Positions 2,954-51,827 of a stretch of 61,078 nt of DNA are shown here, piece after piece. The notes under the pieces were generated by a model. That model worked only from the letters and a program-made list of their open reading frames with translations. It was not told the origin of the DNA and searched no databases. The position numbers and the translations under genes were made by a program. Within the stretch, counting starts at the first letter, position 1; each line of letters begins with the position of its first letter. The stretch comes from Saccostrea cucullata (taxonomy: Eukaryota): contig NW_026940900.1 in NCBI RefSeq assembly GCF_032062105.1, positions 62,001-123,078 of the forward strand, read 5' to 3'.

Positions 2954-3394
2954 TCACGTGGTATACGGAATTTTAAATAAAGTAATTGTAACGTCATCAT
3001 CTCGTCTCTGAAATAACATTTCTCCAGGAAAAGTTAATAATTTTTGTTTTCGTGCACGCATCAACATCCCCACCAGTTTGTTTGATATCGTTGTGTATGC
3101 TTCGAATAGATTTCCAAAGGATATACTGAATGTTCCATCCGCGTTCTTTTGTCCAAGATCAGCGATCACGTGACATAGTTCCACGATTTCTCCGCTGATG
3201 AGTTCTCCGGCCTTTTGACCCCTATATTCTGTCATAGATCCCTCCACGGGGCGTCCGTAGTTAGGGTCATTTTTGTCCAGTTTCTGACGATGTGAGGCCC
3301 CCTCCCATTCAGAGAAGGGGTTTATTTTCTGTTTTTGTTCGTGTTCGTCAAAGAATTTCTGCCACTGGTTGACCCTCTTTGATATCCCTGCCAT
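2954..3394 (-). CDS. ABRA: Actin-binding Rho-activating protein-like (ABRA/STARS, Costars domain), 146 aa, single coding exon
   Basis: Motifs NPFS, YGRPVEGSMTEYRG, FGNLFEAYTTISNKLVGMLMRARK and FPGEMLFQRRDDDV match the ABRA C-terminal region. ACCATGG start at 3394, with a splice acceptor just upstream (~3408). Confidence 0.9.
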   Translation of the reverse strand: MAGISKRVNQWQKFFDEHEQKQKINPFSEWEGASHRQKLDKNDPNYGRPVEGSMTEYRGQKAGELISGEIVELCHVIADLGQKNADGTFSISFGNLFEAYTTISNKLVGMLMRARKQKLLTFPGEMLFQRRDDDVTITLFKIPYTT

Positions 3395-4005
3395 GGTAAC
3401 ATAGATTCTGTGGGTATAAATAATACAGCATAGTTTTACAAAAATAAATACATAATGAAATAAGGGGGTTGCAATCGCACTTAGCAACGATTAACCAACA
3501 TGGTCTTTTACAAAGAAGAGTGAAAAGAACTTGGCGTAATGGGTAGCCTTTAAGACCCTCTCCAACCACTTCCTTTTAAGGAAAAGTCCATGATTTTGAT
3601 GACCTTTATGACATATTTTCAAAAAAAAAAATCTGCAGCTTGACGACCCTCGTATAACTTGGAATACACGCTTGTAGTTACATGCTTTTTAATAGGTCTG
3701 CATTTTTTCTCTACATACATGTAGCAGACATTTACACCACTACTTCTGCTATCACATTGTGACAGATAATTTCGTATTATAGTTTGGTTAACGTTTATAT
3801 ATAGCTTGGCATGCAGTGCATATATAAAGCCTAGTTTACACGTTCTGCTTGAAAGCAACTGCAAAAAACAGACTGACATAATGGACAGACATGTCCAGAC
3901 TTTTTAGGCATTTCTAATTATGATAACCAAAATATTTTTATATATGTAGTAAAGTCTTAAGTTTACACGAACATCTCTACTTTTGCAGCTCTGCTTGAAA
4001 GCAAC

Positions 4006-4287: not shown

Positions 4288-6249
4288 AACCCTTGGATTC
4301 TTTAGGACTTCATATCTTTAGAAGTGGAAAGATGTTCTTGAGTCCAAATAAAACCTGGAATACTTATACAAGTGATATAAAAACATTTTGGTAAACAGTT
4401 TTAGAGTTAAATGTTCATAAAGTACGTGTAAACTTTATGTAATATTTTATATGATTTAATTAAGTTTCATAAAGATGCCTTTTTAATTATAATTTCAGAG
4501 AAGCCTTTTAATGAATCAGTATTAATACAATGACACTTGTAACAATGTGAAATTAGTTTGAAATTATTTATTTCAAATTCTATATGAAAGAATAATGTTT
4601 CTGGTACCAGCGAGTAGCCATGATGGCAGTACAAACACTTTCTTGGAGCTCAACTACCGACATCTCCCAACGATCATTGTAAATCCTGATTATACTCATC
4701 ACTAAGGAAAGGGTCGATTTTTTTTGCAATTATAGTTTTGTCATAGTGTATAGGTTTATATTTCATTTCAACCTCCGATAGTGTGACCATGAGTAGCGCA
4801 AATATCTGCACGAATCTAGTTTATTTTTTATAGCAAGACTGTATGTCGAACACACGTTCATACAGTTGCTGTATGGTGTCTGTAATCATTCTGCTTGATT
4901 GTTGGAACAAGTCCAACTCATACTCCTCGATTCGACAATGCACACGTCTACAAACAGTTCCAAGGAAAATGGTACAGTAATAAACACAAACAAAATAGCT
5001 ATAGACATCAACGAAAGGCAATCGTCAAACGAAATAGGGTTCGAACACCCGCAGGTGGCAGGGAGGATGGAGATCAAGAGAGTACATGTATTAAAATTTG
5101 GATAATGTATGTGTTACTAAAATAGATGGATAACATTAATTTATTTTAAAAGTAAATCTTTATTGTAGAATTGGAGAAAAAAATAATTTGAAATTCTTTT
5201 TTGAAAAGAAGACGTCCGGTCAGTTTATAATGAGTCTATATATCTGCTTTCAGTTTCCAATGGGTACATATGTATATGTATATATACATATATGGCAAAT
5301 GCATTACATTCATAAGAAAAGGGTAGCGGTTTATAATGTTTCAGAAAGACACCAACCCAGAATCTATGCCCTTATCCCCACCCCAGCAGGAGGGATACCA
5401 TATAGTATACTGGCCAGCTAGGAATGTTTTTGATTACCCATCAAACTTAAATAAACATGCACTTTATCAGCGGCGCAAAAAAAGTTAAACTGTATTTTAA
5501 ACCAAGTAAAAATACGGACAGTTAACCACCAAAATAGTACATGTAATAAAGAATAGGGCATATGCATACCTTTGTGTCAGTATTCGAAGAATTCCAAGCC
5601 TAATTCCGCATGCATTCTGCCATATAGAATTTAATCTGCGTGGGAGGATTGTTTACGTAAGGTGGCCCAAGAGGGACATTTCTTAAAATACTAGTACTTT
5701 ACCTGTAAATTCAGAATTCATCTTGAATAGAAAAGGTCAAGAAAACCTGAATCGAAGAACATAATAAAAATAAGTGAATATATAACTATGAATAACAGAA
5801 TATTTTTAAAATTAATTATGTAATGCATGAATGGATATCGAGTAATTTTATACCATTCTTTACTGAGTAAAAATTAATGAAAGAGCAATATTTTCAAGTA
5901 GGAAATGTAAAATGCAACAAGCATGACCATCATGCAATATATATTTACGAAGTTATACTTTGAATTTTGGTAATATCGTCAACCAACCGAAGTTAAAAAT
6001 ATTTGGATATTGATAAATTAAATATTTTGTAACCAAATAATCCGAATTTTACATATTACATCCCTTTAAGTAGTCATATTTTATTATTGCACATCCAGAT
6101 AACACACTCTTATATCTTTCAACCTTATTCCCACTTTTATTGGAAGGTTAAGCACTTGCAATTGTTTAAAGAAAACAATTATAACACAAAATACTTCTCG
6201 TAATTCAGCTCATAACCCAATTTTACATGTCTATGAATATAAATTCCGC

Positions 6250-9757: not shown

Positions 9758-9983
9758 ACAACATATATATAAAAAAGATTAACACTTTACTTTAAAAGGA
9801 ATTTTAGTAATATATGTACATGTACAATGCATTTAAATGAAATATAGTTTTTAATAAATACCAGTATTTGGATTAGAAATTCTACAAATACACAAGGACA
9901 ATGAACCAAACACATTATGTAAAATATATAAAAATTTATTTTCAAAAAAGTCAATATGAGATATAAATAATTTGACATCAGGG

Positions 9984-11072
9984 TTATGTGAGACTTTTTT
10001 GTTCTGTTCTACTGTCGAGCATCTTTTGGACTTTCCTACTACCATAAAGTACAGATTTCACTATTCCTGCGGTGAATATGCCTTTAATGCTCTGGCTTCT
10101 GCTGGAACTCTTCACAATATCTGCAATACTCTGTCTCACATAGTCCGCACAGTTACTGTCAAAAGCTAGCTGTCTAATGATTTCCTCTAAGTCAGGGTAT
10201 TTCCCTGGCCTTTTGTGCATACAAGATAAAAGATTTAACTGAACTGTTTTTGGAAGAAGGTTCAAGTGATGAAATTGGGACACATGATTGGGGTATTGTT
10301 CTAAGACACCTTGCTTCATATTCCATTTGACATGTTCCTCTTTTAATAAAATTTGTTCGTAAAGGTTCCTAAAGTAAGCCATATTTGGTTTGACAATATT
10401 AGAAATTTTGTTTTTGTCTTCACCAAATTTCATCCTGAAGTCACCATCGTACGAGAGGGCAGCAATCTGCTGATACAGTTCCTCCTCCGTGAAAGTTTCT
10501 GGAAGTAAAAGTAATGCTGCATGTATGGCATTCTCCAGATTAATTTGCATAGCCGAACACAGCTCCATCTTCTTGGGTGAAATAAGAATTTTGATTGGTT
10601 TATGCATTCTACCACTCACATACAAAGTGTTCCAATCCAATAGGTCAGTTATAAGTTGTTTAGTGCTTATAACTCCATATTTAATTTCTCTCCCCGCACA
10701 CTGAACTTTAGTATTGAAATAAACAGCAGCACCATACTTCTCTTGAATATTTGAAACTTGTTTTGCTCCCAAAAATTTTAGGAATGAATAGTGTTTCCCA
10801 TTTTGTTTCATATTTTTGTAATGCCAGCTGTATGAATCATCTACAACAAATATCAAATCAATCATATTTCCCTTAACTTGGGCATCACTTTGACCCTCCT
10901 GTTTAAATACTCCAGATCCATAAGCAAATGCCATTTGTATTCCTCCAGGAAACTGCTCCAAGATAGCTTCATACTGATCCAAATGCTTTGAGGGATTACT
11001 GTAGGTTGCATATCGTTTTACACAAAACACTGAACGACAAACTGAAAGTCGAGATAAAACAGACCACATCAT
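9984..11072 (-). CDS. TAMM41: Mitochondrial phosphatidate cytidylyltransferase (Tam41), 362 aa, intronless
   Basis: AFAYGSGVFKQ, MIDLIFVVDD, AAVYFNT, IKYGVIS, DLLDWNTLYVSGRMHKP, LSYDGDFRMKFGEDKNKISNIV and QSIKGIFTAG motifs. The Arg/Ser-rich, acid-free N-terminus resembles a mitochondrial presequence. Confidence 0.96.
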   Translation of the reverse strand: MMWSVLSRLSVCRSVFCVKRYATYSNPSKHLDQYEAILEQFPGGIQMAFAYGSGVFKQEGQSDAQVKGNMIDLIFVVDDSYSWHYKNMKQNGKHYSFLKFLGAKQVSNIQEKYGAAVYFNTKVQCAGREIKYGVISTKQLITDLLDWNTLYVSGRMHKPIKILISPKKMELCSAMQINLENAIHAALLLLPETFTEEELYQQIAALSYDGDFRMKFGEDKNKISNIVKPNMAYFRNLYEQILLKEEHVKWNMKQGVLEQYPNHVSQFHHLNLLPKTVQLNLLSCMHKRPGKYPDLEEIIRQLAFDSNCADYVRQSIADIVKSSSRSQSIKGIFTAGIVKSVLYGSRKVQKMLDSRTEQKSLT

Positions 11073-11308
11073 TTCTCTCGCTCAAACACACCAACACCGT
11101 CCACTTCTGAATTCTTCAGATTATCAAGTTGCTTTTTTCCCAACCTATATTGATACTCTATCCTCAATGTGTCTGTTCGAGGCAATTTTGCATTTTTGCG
11201 GAACTCAGTACGGATTATTTCTTTTAAACCTGGTTTATCTTTTGAGAGTTTTAAAAATTCCTTGTAGAGGCTTAAAATTTGAAGCTGAATTTGACTGTGT
11301 TTTGGCAT
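11069..11308 (-). CDS. SDHAF1: Succinate dehydrogenase assembly factor 1 (LYR-motif protein), 79 aa
   Basis: MPKHSQIQLQILSLYKEFLK...IRTEFRKNAKLPRTDTLRIEYQYRLGKKQL parallels vertebrate SDHAF1 (HSRLQRQVLSLYR...[30 protein letters not shown]). Acceptor TTTCCATTTCAG ends at 11331, 22 nt upstream of the ATG. Confidence 0.93.
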   Translation of the reverse strand: MPKHSQIQLQILSLYKEFLKLSKDKPGLKEIIRTEFRKNAKLPRTDTLRIEYQYRLGKKQLDNLKNSEVDGVGVFEREK

Positions 11309-11679
11309 GACAAGTTTTATCAACTTGAATCTGAAATGGAAAAAAGAATCATGTATTATTTGTATATCTTGTAAGAATATCTTGTTAATCAATTAATAAA
11401 TTGCACACATACTCAGTTTAGGCCTTGGTACATTAACAAATACTTAGATCAACCAGAGACTTATATATAGGCCTATCGGTCCCTGGATCAACTATAGTAC
11501 TATTTATTCAGGGCATGTGTCGAGGAAATTCTGACTTATCTATATATCACGTTAAAAATCTCATTATTTTTAGGTTAACGTATTGAAGACAATAAAAATA
11601 TCTAACATTGTTAATTTACTATTGAGGAGATGGTATTAATTTTATGTATATTAATTTAAACACAATGAACACGCCTACC

Positions 11680-12062
11680 AGGATCAATTTGTCCTTCCAT
11701 AAGCTGACTGCATTCTGATTCTGGTTCCTATCATATGGAAAGCGAACCAGCAAAATATTTAGTAAAGCGTACACATGTGTCATGACCCTTTCTTTATTAA
11801 TTTGAAAGACTTATAAAGATTGTTTTAAAAAAATTATTGTTCTCTGTTTTTTCTACACTAAACTGAAAGAATTCGATGACATTTAACAAGATAAAAATCT
11901 TGATAAAAGAATACGCTTTACTTCGAAATAGAAATCGTTCGAGTTAACCAACAAGTTAAAAATAGATATTTTATTTATAGACCTTTATAAACACATTTCA
12001 TTTTGATTTTCTTCTATATTAACGAGGATAGCGTGTGTAGCAGTTCTGTAACGATTGATTCG
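11680..12062. promoter_or_regulatory. Putative bidirectional promoter between SDHAF1/TAMM41 (-) and KCTD3/SHKBP1 (+)
   Basis: Divergent genes. A candidate 5' exon donor (CTG|GTAGGC) at 11679/11678 on - and the KCTD3 ATG at 12063 leave <400 bp between them. Confidence 0.55.
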
Positions 12063-15000
12063 ATGCCAGGAGACGTGATTCACCTCAATGTAGGAGGAAC
12101 AAGGTAAGAAAAGAAGTAATTTAGTAAAATTTCGTTTGTTAAAAATTTTCTGCAGCAAAGTAGTTGCATTTGATTTGTTGTTGCTCATCAAATATGGTTG
12201 CTCCACTATTACATGAGAGTTTCTTTTTCATACAGGTTTTCAACATCAAGACATACCCTGACATGGATTCCAGATTCGTTCTTTACAAGGTATGATTAAA
12301 TCTTAAAAAAGAAAATGCATTGAGTGAGGTACTGTTTAAAACAATATAATGCCCAATTTTTTTAGCCTAGTATCCCCTGGCATGTTCTTGAAATCAAGGG
12401 TGGCGGTCAACCGAGTTTGATTGCTGATGGCCAGATAGCTCAGTCGGTAGAGCACCTGATCAGAGATTCAGGGGGCCAGGGTTCGAATCCCGGTCTGTTC
12501 CACTGCATTTTCTCCTCTCCCTTTACATTTGATGTCGTGACCATGCCCTAGAACCAGAAATGAGCGGGGGTTGGGGTCTTTAGAGGCCAAAGACCTTTAA
12601 GGAGGGAGGAATGTGGCAGTCAGCTGGGTTCGTTCTCCGCTGGCCAATTGTAGCTCAGTGGGTACAGCACCTGACCAGAGATTCAGGGGGCCCAAAGTTT
12701 GAATCATGGTCTGGTCTACTGCATTTTTCTCCTCTCTCCTAACACAAGTAAATATTCTCCTTTCTCCTAACACAAGTAAATTTGCAAAATTTACTGTCAA
12801 AACATTAGATCCTCCTAATTATGTTCCCCAAACGAAGTTGGGGAACATATTGTTTTTACTCTGTTTCTTATTATTATTAAGGTCTTCCATTTCCAACGGA
12901 AGACCTTTCTGTTATTCTTAGGTTTCTTTTCCAGTTTTTTTCTTTTTTTTCTTACCGATTTTGTGCACGCGAGTTCTCGGAAACGGCTTGTTCGATTTTC
13001 ATGAAACTTTCAGGGCTGATGGAACATCAAAAAATCTAGATATATATTTTTTAATTTTGATGACGTCACTTCCGGTTCCGAGATTTTTGCATTTTAGTGA
13101 ATTTCAGAGGGTTAGTTTGTCCGCGAGTTTTCTCGAAAACGGCTTAAAATAGAAACTTGAGATTTTCAGTGATAATAGAGCAATAAATGTAGTTGTGCGG
13201 AACGTATTTCATATTCACCGAAATTGCTTTGTACGGAAGCTAGTTTTGGCCCGAAAATAGTCCTATCGCGAATTTCAAAAATTTTTACACCTTTTCATCG
13301 ATAACTTTTTACCTAGAAATATTTTTTTAAAACATGTATAACAAAAGAAGTGTAGAATTCCAAGATCTTTCAAATGATATCTCGAAAAAAGGGCTGGCCC
13401 CTAAAATTAAGGGCCTAGCGGGGTCGAAAGTTTTTCTTTTATATCTCAAAAAGTATTGAGAATTTGTAATACGTCAAAGAAGCAAAATTGTTCAAAATGT
13501 TAAGCTTCATTTATTGGAGTCATCAAAATACGTCCGGCGACGTCACTTCCGGCCAAACCGGAAGTAGTCAGAAAACGCATATTTTGGCCGTTCTTGACAA
13601 GATTTTGGGTATCATCTGTCACTGGGAGCCTAAAAATTAAATTTCCATCCGTCGTCATCACTTCCGGTCAAACCGAAAGTAGCAAAAATTAGCTTATTTC
13701 TGCTTTAATTAACATAGATTTTGAGGATTTAAACCATTTTTCGGCATTATTACTCAATTTTGTTACAAATAAAAGTAACTTCCGGTCAAACAGGACGGAA
13801 GACCTACTCGTTGCTTTGCAACGAGCTTTGCTCTAGTTATGTTCCCCAAACGAAGTTGGGGAACATATTGTTTTTACTCTGTTTCTTATTATTAAGGTCT
13901 TCCGTCTTCACGGAAGACCTTATAGTGATTCTACTGTTTCTTATTATTCTTTTTATTATTTTTTTGACTTTATAATTTTGTGCACGCGATTTCTCGAAGA
14001 CTACTGGATGGAATGACGTAAAACTTTCAGAAAAGATGTGTCGTAACATGAATTTTGTATATCCGAGAGAAAATTTGGAAACTCACTTCCGGTGCCAAGT
14101 TACGGACAATTTCCTGAAATTAAAATGACATTTTGTCCTCGATTAAACTTAAAAACGGTAAAAGATATCAACATGAAACTTTCAGGGATTATAGATCGTG
14201 ATATATACTATCCAGGACGCGACTTTATGTTCGTCGTCGGTACTTCCTGTCGTTAGGTGAAGGGGATTGAAAAAATCGCATTTTCTAACTTTTTTGTTTT
14301 TCAATATTTTTTATTTATTTTTGGAATATTAATAGAGACACTTCTATTGATGCTTACTATATAAGTTGTTTGAATATTGGTTAATCTGAACTCTAGATAT
14401 TAATATTTGAAAATCTGAAGCGGGTCCAAGATGGCGTCTGCCTCTGTCAACTCCGCCATTTCGCGAGTAGGGGTTTATGGAGGCAGCTGAGCGTTTGATT
14501 AAACCATTCTGACATAATGATACATGAAATGTAAAAAACTACTTGGACTTTCACGTAGTAGTACGTTGTAATTACGTGTCAATCTTAAAACTTAATTTCC
14601 GTTTCACTGCTTTAGTTTAACTGGGCTAGATACGATATGTAATGTGTACAATGTGTTAAATATACCTTCTTAACGTCGAAATAAAATAAAGGCGATAAGA
14701 ACGTTTTATTAATTTAATTTCATTGAAGCTATCACACCTATTTAATAGATCAGTCCAAAGAAAAGGTGCAAACATTTACTCATGGCGTTTGGCGCGAAAT
14801 TATGAATAGTGGCCGGTCGTTTATAATTCTTAGACAGGTGTACTGTTGCAAATGTATACACAAGTATATTTAGAGCACTGCTCCCAATAGCTTAATGGTT
14901 TTCGTGTTAATCAAACACGAAGTAATTACGTTACAATTCTGTGTCAAAATAAAGATGTATTCCAGAGTCTTCTCAAACGTCTTCTGTGACTGGTTTTGGT

Positions 15001-49086: not shown

Positions 49087-51827
49087 TCATTTCAAGTACT
49101 TCATGCAGTCATGTAGAATGTCAATTCCATGAAGTTCCCGTAGTCTTTCTAAATGCCTCTTATCACCCTGAGCAAGCTTAGCTATAAGAATGGCACAATT
49201 TTGCTGGAGACCAGACTTCTTTCCATCTCGCGCCAAAACCAAGAGGTCCTTAATGATATCAGTCTTTGCTAGGGCTGCACAAACTTTGGGCACCTGGGTG
49301 CAGTGGCTGAGGCACAGAGCAGCATTTCCTATCACAGTCTCATCCTCACATTGCAGTTGTTTTATCAGAGTCCCCAATCCTTTGTGGTCCACCACGAAAA
49401 TTCGGGCATGGTCATTTATCTGAGTGCAGCCAGTAAGGGCCTTCAGGGCAAACTTCCTATTGGCCGATTCTTCGTCGTTCTTCAAAATGAACACCAAGAC
49501 CTCCACCCCTACGTTGTCACAAAACCAGTCCACTGATGGAATGGAGTAGGGTAAGATGTGGCTGAGAATGCCTAGGCTGCGAGATACCATCAACTTGTAG
49601 TGTTTCAGCGATTGACAGATCATGAGGCACTGTTTGCAAATGGGAAGACTAAACTCCTTAAAGTTCATACTAGTTTGTTCATGGGTCAAATTAGATATGA
49701 GGCCTAAGCAAGCTTCCACAAGCTCCACACTGATAGGTTGAGGTAATTTTTGTTTGTGGTTAGAAACAGTGTCTAAAAGGATTTTCCAGAGATCTTTCCT
49801 GTCGGAAATCTTTTTCCTGATGACAACATCAGTGGAGAGGTTGGTGATTGTGGAGACACAGGAGGGTAGAACGGACTGTTTACTAGATCCCTCCTTCAAA
49901 AGATTTTCAAAAGCCGGTATGACACTTATTTCAATTTTATCTCTTAGTTGCTGCTTAAACTTGTTGTCAAGGGCCAGATTGTTCAGAACACATCCTGCGG
50001 TTAATGCAGCATCATCATTTGCTCTGATCAAGTTGAACACAATGGTAAGTAATCTGGAAATGTCAAACTTTTGAAACACCAATGATCGTCCAATAACAGA
50101 TATCGTCACTGTGTGAAGAATCTTCACACAACTGGATTTAAGAACACGACCTAGACCTTTCATTTTCACTTCCATGAACCTCATCAGTTTGTCAGGCATC
50201 CCTTCGATACACAAGAAAACTTCCTGATTCTTCTCATTATCTTCACAAGCCAAACTGAACATGCACAATCCGGAGTTCAACATATCTAATTCCTCCTTTG
50301 ACAGACTCTTTGGTGAAGCAGAAAAACATTTAGAGAAGCATGGATGTTCATTAACAATTTGGAATCCTCCCTCTGTTCTAAAGAGAGTCCGTTCTTCATT
50401 GTTTTTCAGGAAATTTTGCATTATTTGAAATCCTCCACTGTAGTAAATAGGAAGCTGGTCTTTCTTCTGGAGTTGCTGAAGTAAAGCTACAGGGCCTTTA
50501 TCACCTGCCTGAAAAGCCTCCTTTGCCTTATCTTCCTCCTGCTGTGTCCGTTCCGCCCTATCAACTTCTGCCAAGTAGTCGTTGATCAGGTTTTGTTTGG
50601 TTGGGTCACATTCAAGAGCTTTCTTGTAAGCCTCTCTTGCTTCCTTGTATTTCCTAAGACCAAGATTAGCCTTTCCCATCAGAACATGGGCTTTCATGCT
50701 GTTGTTAAAAACCCTTATTGCCCAATCACAGTCAACAAGAGCATCTTCATATCTACCTAATTTAATGTTAGTCTGTGCCTTATTGGTCCATAAAGCGAGA
50801 TGATCTTTAATATGCGTCAGTCCCTCTGTATAGAACTCTAGTGCTTTCTCATAATTCCCCTGTCGGAATTCTTCATTTCCTTTCTCTTTCAACTCATTAG
50901 CCTTCTTCTCACCAACTTTTCTCCTTTCTGCCCTCTCTCTTGCATCTGCTTCCATGGCTGCCATAAAACCTAGTTGATCTGGTGGTGCCATTGGCTGGGG
51001 ACCACTGGGAGGTGGTGCTGTGGAGGGGGACTTGTTGATTACAGTTTTACTGAATCCCGTTTTGGTGGAGGGTAAGGGTTCCTTAGATTCCTCCTCCTCA
51101 TCTTCTGTCTGGTTCAACTTCTCATTTAGCTGTGCTTGGTTTTTGGCAATTATTTCATCAGCTTTCTGCATAGCTTGTTTGACATCCTTATCTTCTCCAT
51201 ACTTGAGAGTTTTCACCTGAACAGAAAATATATATATTTTACATTTGTTTTCAATTGATTGATTAAAAAATATGCTTATTCCATATTTTTCTGTGGTTTA
51301 CTTAGCATTCACCCATCTTGCAATTATCTACCTTACAACTTTTCATCAAAATTTTCAAAAATGAAAACTAAAACAGACTTGAGGCTCTCAATGTCCAAAT
51401 CCAATTTAAACATTACTGTCGGCAGGGGAAGCTCACACCTCCATGGCACCTGATCCCACCTCTGATGTTTCAGAGGTCCGTGTTTCACAGTTTGCTTTGT
51501 TCCTATTTCATTTTTTTTTTTGTTTTATGGACAGTCTTTTGATCTTGAATACTGTTCGTTATCTCCATATGTTTCATTAAATTCATTACACTGGGACCAA
51601 ATATCTAATACTTGTACTTGCAAACACAAGCATTCTAGAAATTTCCTCGCTAGGTCACAACCTCACAATCAGAAGCCGAGAAGGTCAGTCGATGGATTCG
51701 ACAGACATTAAAAAATAAATTAGGTATGTAAGAAATCTGTATTTCGTACCAAAGTCTCAATTTCATCCACTTTGTTGATGAATTCATCCAATTTCTTTGA
51801 ATCTTTCGTTATATCGTCGCCCGCCAT
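49087..51827 (-). CDS. TTC12: Tetratricopeptide repeat protein 12 (TPR + armadillo-like repeats), 735 aa, two coding exons (51827-51750, 51216-49087)
   Basis: MAGDDITKDSKKLDEFINKVDEIETL|VKTLK joins in phase 0. FMAAMEADARERAERR, LKEKGNEEFRQGNY, WTNKAQ, ALVDCDWA, GNAALCL and HLERLRELHGIDIL match TTC12. Confidence 0.92.
51415..51570 (+). mobile_element. Fragment of a SINE/LINE-tail-like interspersed repeat in the TTC12 intron
   Basis: GTCGGCAGGGGAAGCTCACACCTCCATGGCACCTGATCCCACCTCTG...GGTCCGTGTTT resembles a common bivalve repeat. Recognised from memory, not verified. Confidence 0.4.

Follow-up and report, generated by a model that had tools for sequence, protein, structure and literature searches.

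How is the second protein made when the stop codon of one nuclear gene lies inside the start of the next? This question is raised by a 61,078-nucleotide (nt) stretch of Saccostrea cucullata DNA (the window), on the minus strand of which SDHAF1 (11308 to 11069) and an intronless TAMM41 (11072 to 9984) occupy one common terminal exon and are joined by an ATGA stop/start overlap. The initial annotation had described this arrangement, and upon re-reading the sequence, the coordinates, the overlap and the single acceptor at 11331 held in every detail checked. The shared exon (9920 to 11330, minus strand) has its counterpart in Magallana exon 3, which contains both open reading frames (ORFs), and its 3′ end is approximate, being placed from the AATAAA at 9940. 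It opens behind a pyrimidine tract and splice acceptor (11331 to 11350, minus strand; AG at 11332 to 11331, CAG, 14 of 17 pyrimidines), and RNA contigs of Magallana are spliced at the corresponding acceptor. The sole AATAAA between 9800 and 11335 is a likely polyadenylation signal located 3′ of TAMM41 (9935 to 9940, minus strand), and none separates SDHAF1 from TAMM41. Likewise, no strong acceptor was found just before the TAMM41 ATG, where the AGs at −8, −4, and −2 are all GAG with 8 to 9 of 17 pyrimidines, bearing out the earlier statement that neither a polyadenylation signal nor a good acceptor lies between the ORFs. A probable 5′ noncoding exon (11679 to 11800, minus strand), with a candidate donor at 11679/11678, is suggested by loose alignment to Magallana exon 1.

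The upstream ORF (11069 to 11308, minus strand; ATG at 11308, stop TGA at 11071 to 11069) encodes a LYR protein of 79 amino acids (aa) that matches PF05347 (E = 4.5e-10; 39.8 bits, cut-off 24.8), is 86% identical to the Crassostrea virginica protein, and has a dN/dS of 0.03 versus Ostrea edulis. Matches of the C. virginica orthologue are named SDHAF1 (P0128, P0130, and Geotrypetes SDHAF1, the latter at 55%), and the most distant TAMM41-linked LYR protein falls in SDHAF1 clusters. By these named relatives, the protein is assigned to SDHAF1 over other LYRM proteins. SDHAF1 promotes SDHB iron-sulfur maturation, a family role that is predicted for this protein. The downstream ORF (9984 to 11072, minus strand; ATG at 11072 to 11070, second ATG at 11069 to 11067, stop ending at 9984) encodes a TAMM41 of 362 aa that aligns to positions 2 to 322 of the 322-position profile PF09139 (E = 7.7e-115), retains 68 of 68 invariant family columns in a 22-sequence animal alignment, and has a dN/dS of 0.04 to 0.07. 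Its best named matches are from O. edulis (83%) and C. virginica (82%), it groups with oysters at 100% support, and the C. virginica orthologue matches PDB entries 6ig2 and 6ig4. The first ~24 aa (11001 to 11072, minus strand) resemble a mitochondrial presequence: in all oysters the first 25 aa contain 3 to 4 Arg/Lys and zero acidic residues, with the common motifs Trp3, L-S-R-L/I-S, and Arg-x-Tyr, and this N-terminus presumably directs mitochondrial targeting. Because it is conserved and the next in-frame Met is residue 48, inside the domain, the overlapping ATG appears to be the working TAMM41 start, in agreement with the earlier argument from the presequence-like peptide, which now extends to four oyster genera.

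Both genes are single-copy in the genome, aside from a second assembly copy (contig C8820, L005:1501-2830) that is 98% identical including the intron and flanks, keeps the overlap, and looks like a haplotig; as it is the sole further copy, both proteins must come from the locus in the window. In the C8820 copy, TAMM41 has gained 1 nt and SDHAF1 has, near its end, lost a net 6 nt; either errors of assembly or a null allele may account for these differences. An origin as a retrocopy or pseudogene was considered and ruled out, the parent copy being absent from the genome and purifying selection being strong.

The ATGATG junction (11067 to 11072, minus strand) holds, in succession, TAMM41 Met1, the SDHAF1 stop, and TAMM41 Met2. 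The identical 79-codon SDHAF1 length and the ATGA are found in C. virginica, O. edulis, and Magallana, at dS values among oysters of 1.3 to saturated and dN/dS of 0.03 to 0.07 for both ORFs, ratios indicative of purifying selection on SDHAF1 and TAMM41 alike. Because the ATGA has been kept in three other genera despite this divergence at synonymous sites, it is not a product of chance. The initial annotation had stressed a double overlap involving both methionines; both are present here, but Met2 (TGATG) is private to S. cucullata and has no counterpart in the other three oysters, and the conserved element is ATGA. Conservation in relatives, which had been proposed as a check on the arrangement, was found as the ATGA in four oyster genera and as pairing of the two genes in further spiralians.

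The surroundings are conserved as well. A KCTD3/SHKBP1-like gene (BTB_2, WD40) with its first coding exon at 12063 to 12103 (plus strand), 733 nt from the acceptor of the shared exon, lies divergently upstream, and the same head-to-head order occurs in four oyster genera including this one; the stretch between the two units is a probable bidirectional promoter. Downstream lies a Costars-domain (ABRA-like) gene (2954 to 3487, minus strand), which is also the downstream neighbor in Magallana; a gene model of Mytilus edulis (P0266) fuses it to TAMM41. Elsewhere in the window, we observed an uninterrupted ORF of 709 aa with TPR and ARM repeats (49087 to 51216, minus strand), which we take to be TTC12-like and whose absence of introns suggests a retrocopy; a B-box/NHL TRIM-like ORF of 577 aa (32332 to 34065, minus strand), of a kind expanded in oysters; and an exon-containing stretch of a tetrahydrofolate dehydrogenase/cyclohydrolase gene (PF02882; 57229 to 57732, plus strand).

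Transcription of the pair was assessed in Logan short-read contigs from the Pacific-oyster group (the sister genus) and from a cephalopod; such contigs report presence only, drop rare isoforms, and cannot prove single molecules. On the M. angulata locus (L109), the Pacific-oyster contigs define exon 1 (~2790 to 2833), exon 2 (5216 to 5276), and exon 3 (from 5750), with clear GT-AG ends for the second intron, and exon 3, the last one, holds both ORFs. The spliced SDHAF1 form of Magallana is indexed in 72 blocks, in a contig set that was picked on an intact SDHAF1 ORF and is therefore biased. The cephalopod set was picked on TAMM41 alone (n = 24, 10 shown); these contigs are transcript-like, their ends recur across runs, and they are sister to an Octopus cluster. 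All 10 of those shown reach upstream into SDHAF1 or into the 55-nt spacer, and none of the 10 has an alternative 5′ exon. Contigs of C. virginica, O. edulis, and P0146 are unspliced and thus uninformative on RNA. The layout found is accordingly that of a nuclear bicistron, namely, two conserved ORFs (dN/dS < 0.07) on one spliced transcript in the Magallana short-read contigs. No TAMM41-only isoform was detected among the Magallana and cephalopod contigs, from which, as short-read assemblies, rare forms drop out, and the bicistronic mRNA is likely the main source of oyster TAMM41. The earlier proposal that one mRNA co-produces both proteins thus stands as far as spliced sister-genus contigs carry both ORFs, whereas translation of both from a single molecule is what we infer. 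In the cephalopod, the spacer (L125:326-380) contains AATAAA and ATTAAA ahead of a T tract, and SDHAF1-only mRNAs may also be made there from these putative poly(A) signals.

These data bear on the possibility that the two genes share a promoter but not an mRNA, with minor TAMM41 transcripts that splice before the ATG or start inside SDHAF1, and with the two-ORF RNA yielding SDHAF1 alone. Rare isoforms of this kind would be among those that contigs drop, Magallana has a T-rich GAG at −8 (12 of 17 pyrimidines), and the spacers of Lingula, Potamilus, and L022 contain a plausible acceptor, such that these three may make separate mRNAs from a shared promoter. The Drosophila lists give Tam41 (CG33331) a 5′ UTR in common with CG33332 and do not class it as dicistronic (PMC4528330, PMC4736822). 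However, the candidate acceptors of oysters are GAG or AAG, the AG at −8 is missing in O. edulis, none of the contigs seen uses a candidate internal acceptor, and the spacers of the cephalopod, L017, L024, L025, L048, L051, L055, and L077 lack a strong acceptor. We therefore consider separate mRNAs an improbable source of oyster TAMM41.

Beyond oysters, TAMM41 directly follows a same-strand SDHAF1 in Potamilus (spacer, 333 to 342 nt), Lingula (174 nt), and an annelid-like ENA contig (27 nt), and the tandem occurs in 10 of 80 metagenome loci. Altogether, bivalves other than oysters, a brachiopod, and annelids carry it, with spacers of 12 to 402 nt; Pomacea linkage is known from a fused gene model alone. 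According to trees obtained from quick runs only, the linked metagenome loci comprise heterodont bivalves, annelid-like loci, one unplaced long branch, and one distant pair. Loci of this distant pair overlap by ATGA (L075, L121) or TAATG (L082), and their AT-rich, compact layout and neighboring sarcosine-oxidase-like gene make them probable bdelloid rotifers. The gene order in L121:632-1062 and L082:1-1565 is RSL24D1-like, SDHAF1, and TAMM41, followed in L082 by the sarcosine-oxidase-like gene. In both L121 and L082, an out-of-frame AUG lies 7 nt before the SDHAF1 AUG and could carry ribosomes past it. SDHAF1 is absent within 6 kb upstream of TAMM41 in amphioxus and Priapulus, where TAMM41 is intron-rich, and it is absent within the DNA sampled at clitellate-like and arthropod-like loci, labels that derive from the samples and from placement in the tree. 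Every linked TAMM41 on a complete contig lacks introns, with the exception of L082, the intron of which lies two codons from the amphioxus one. The simplest history that we infer from this distribution is one in which an intronless TAMM41 arrived downstream of SDHAF1 in an early spiralian, clitellates lost the pair, and the spacer shrank to an overlap at least twice.

Some gene models suggest a fused SDHAF1-TAMM41 protein, which could arise through splicing or through slippage into the −1 frame at the stop. TAMM41 is indeed in the −1 frame, GAA AAA precedes the stop in three oysters, where Lys-tRNA re-pairing would be possible, and the database models of Potamilus, Pomacea, and an ENA contig show a fusion. 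Against this, the S. cucullata codons are GAG AAA, a predicted intron connects the two ORFs in the Potamilus model, a TGA is read through in the ENA model, TAMM41 retains its own presequence, and frames and spacer stops vary among relatives; a fused product is thus very improbable. Of the 12 nonoverlapped loci, 9 have a spacer length divisible by three (L016, L017, L018, L022, L048, L051, L055, L077, and L096; P = 0.004, a post hoc value from partly related loci). Readthrough fusion across these spacers was rejected, since 6 of the 9 contain in-frame stops. SDHAF1 has no gene call in the records of O. edulis, M. angulata, and Lingula, and the models of Potamilus and Pomacea merge it with TAMM41 (misannotated set: L010, L109, L018, P0043, and P0048).

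Given a bicistronic mRNA, ribosomes terminating at the UGA could restart at the overlapping AUG, in a coupled termination-reinitiation that would fix the ratio of the two proteins. The exact ATGA in four oyster genera at a dS of 1.3 to saturated is consistent with this reading, all the more so as an earlier stop would arise by single changes in the final E-R-E-K codons and yet the ATGA has been kept, and ATGA and TAATG overlaps recur far away in the tree, in the two probable rotifer loci. However, UGGGA, the 18S-complementary TURBS motif, occurs in S. cucullata alone (11138 to 11142, minus strand), and this pentamer was weighed as a TURBS motif and rejected, as it is missing from C. virginica, O. 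edulis, and Magallana. Nor was a conserved RNA structure found at the junction, where consensus folds are weak (−6 to −7 kcal/mol), and synonymous sites before the SDHAF1 stop are no more conserved among oysters than elsewhere. Junction types are the same as those of viral reinitiation, AUGA and UAAUG, used in TURBS of caliciviruses and influenza B and in SART1 coupling (PMC10275272), but the oyster pair consists of cellular housekeeping genes in which we found no conserved rRNA-complementary motif or structure. The stop-start distance in oysters (−4) lies within the ~20 nt expected of TURBS, although a conserved motif on a structure is lacking; TURBS reinitiation tolerates ~20 to 30 nt, whereas spacers exceed 30 nt in 9 of 12 nonoverlapped relatives (PMC10275272 for the tolerated distance). 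With respect to the earlier comparison of the overlap with termination-reinitiation junctions, the ATGA is conserved, but the lack of a conserved TURBS-like motif and the spacers of 12 to 402 nt in relatives weigh against the overlap itself driving reinitiation, and we regard coupled reinitiation as possible but unlikely. A stronger version, in which oysters and, independently, the probable rotifers tightened an ancient spiralian bicistron to a selected overlap, with TURBS-less coupling setting the ratio of two essential mitochondrial proteins, appears more doubtful.

Because spacer length varies between −4 and 402 nt and a conserved TURBS-like motif was not found, we favor a distance-independent route, namely, leaky scanning combined with reinitiation after a mini-ORF, to which we give a probability of slightly more than one-half. 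One promoter would yield a spliced mRNA with SDHAF1, then TAMM41, in its last exon. Many ribosomes would initiate at the SDHAF1 AUG, while a fraction would bypass it (G at −3, C at +4). The bypassing ribosomes would meet one further AUG, that of a mini-ORF of 9 to 11 codons ending 92 nt upstream of TAMM41, and would then start or restart at the TAMM41 AUG, which has A at −3 in other oysters and at Met2 here. Junction-dependent decay would be avoided because the SDHAF1 stop is in the last exon, with no exon junction downstream. The ATGA would then be the oyster end-point of a shrunken spacer and not required by the pair.

Several observations can be set beside this route. The mini-ORF (11164 to 11193, minus strand; 9 codons, third frame, A at −3) confirms the earlier count of a single internal AUG in SDHAF1, at 11193; this AUG is present in all four oysters and stems from a conserved Asn-Ala codon pair. 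The −3 base of SDHAF1 is G or T in 6 of 6 overlapped loci, and that of TAMM41 is mostly A. Between the two starts there is one AUG in oysters, 4 in the cephalopod, and 9 in L025, and AUG depletion before TAMM41 is not significant with oysters counted once (P = 0.10 to 0.28). The trends in start context and AUG number fit leaky scanning but lose significance upon merging of related loci. Short upstream ORFs precede the SDHAF1 AUG in 11 of 18 versus 9 of 26 cases (P = 0.12), some of the counts being intronic. Leaky scanning has been demonstrated for green-algal bicistrons, including TOM22_SDHAF3 (PMC11892635). Two points count against the favored route: the internal AUG, with its good context, could trap scanning ribosomes, and scanning alone does not explain a stop positioned exactly on the ATGA in four genera.

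Regarding flies, we take CG34229 to be SDHAF1. This gene is absent from the Drosophila dicistronic and polycistronic lists, which comprise 159 dicistronic pairs, 45 of them from dicistronic transcripts only (PMC4528330). Some Drosophila dicistronic loci likewise have short ORF overlaps, and FlyBase contains 26 genes whose coding frames overlap on polycistronic transcripts (PMC4528330), which makes such overlaps less exceptional in animal nuclear genomes than the initial annotation implied. Human MIEF1 mRNA similarly encodes a short LYR (PF05347) protein upstream of a longer mitochondrial protein (PMC4383229), but with another LYR member and partner, whereas the oyster ORF1 is the only SDHAF1 of the genome and the pair has a stop/start overlap in one exon. 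At the green-algal TOM22_SDHAF3 locus, a conserved nuclear bicistron likewise encodes two mitochondrial proteins, an SDH assembly factor among them (PMC11892635), but it involves other genes in another kingdom, with the SDH factor as ORF2 and a spacer between the ORFs. MOCS2A/MOCS2B is an ancient animal bicistron with overlapping reading frames (works cited in PMC5817353); in contrast to the oyster pair, it encodes subunits of one enzyme. A literature search, to which subscription papers were mostly closed, returned no description of SDHAF1-TAMM41 linkage. SDHAF1 and TAMM41 are not known to interact directly. The pair is real and conserved, and apparently undescribed.

The locus matters in several respects. 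Within Spiralia, these two genes are found at spacers of anything from −4 to about 400 nt, a natural series that makes the route to the second ORF testable; functional cellular reinitiation after a long ORF is not established according to the review on viral reinitiation (PMC10275272). The same series allows the passage from a shared promoter to a bicistron and on to an overlap to be traced. Finally, it matters for annotation, given that the gene calls for O. edulis and M. angulata miss SDHAF1 and the models of Potamilus and Pomacea fuse it to TAMM41.
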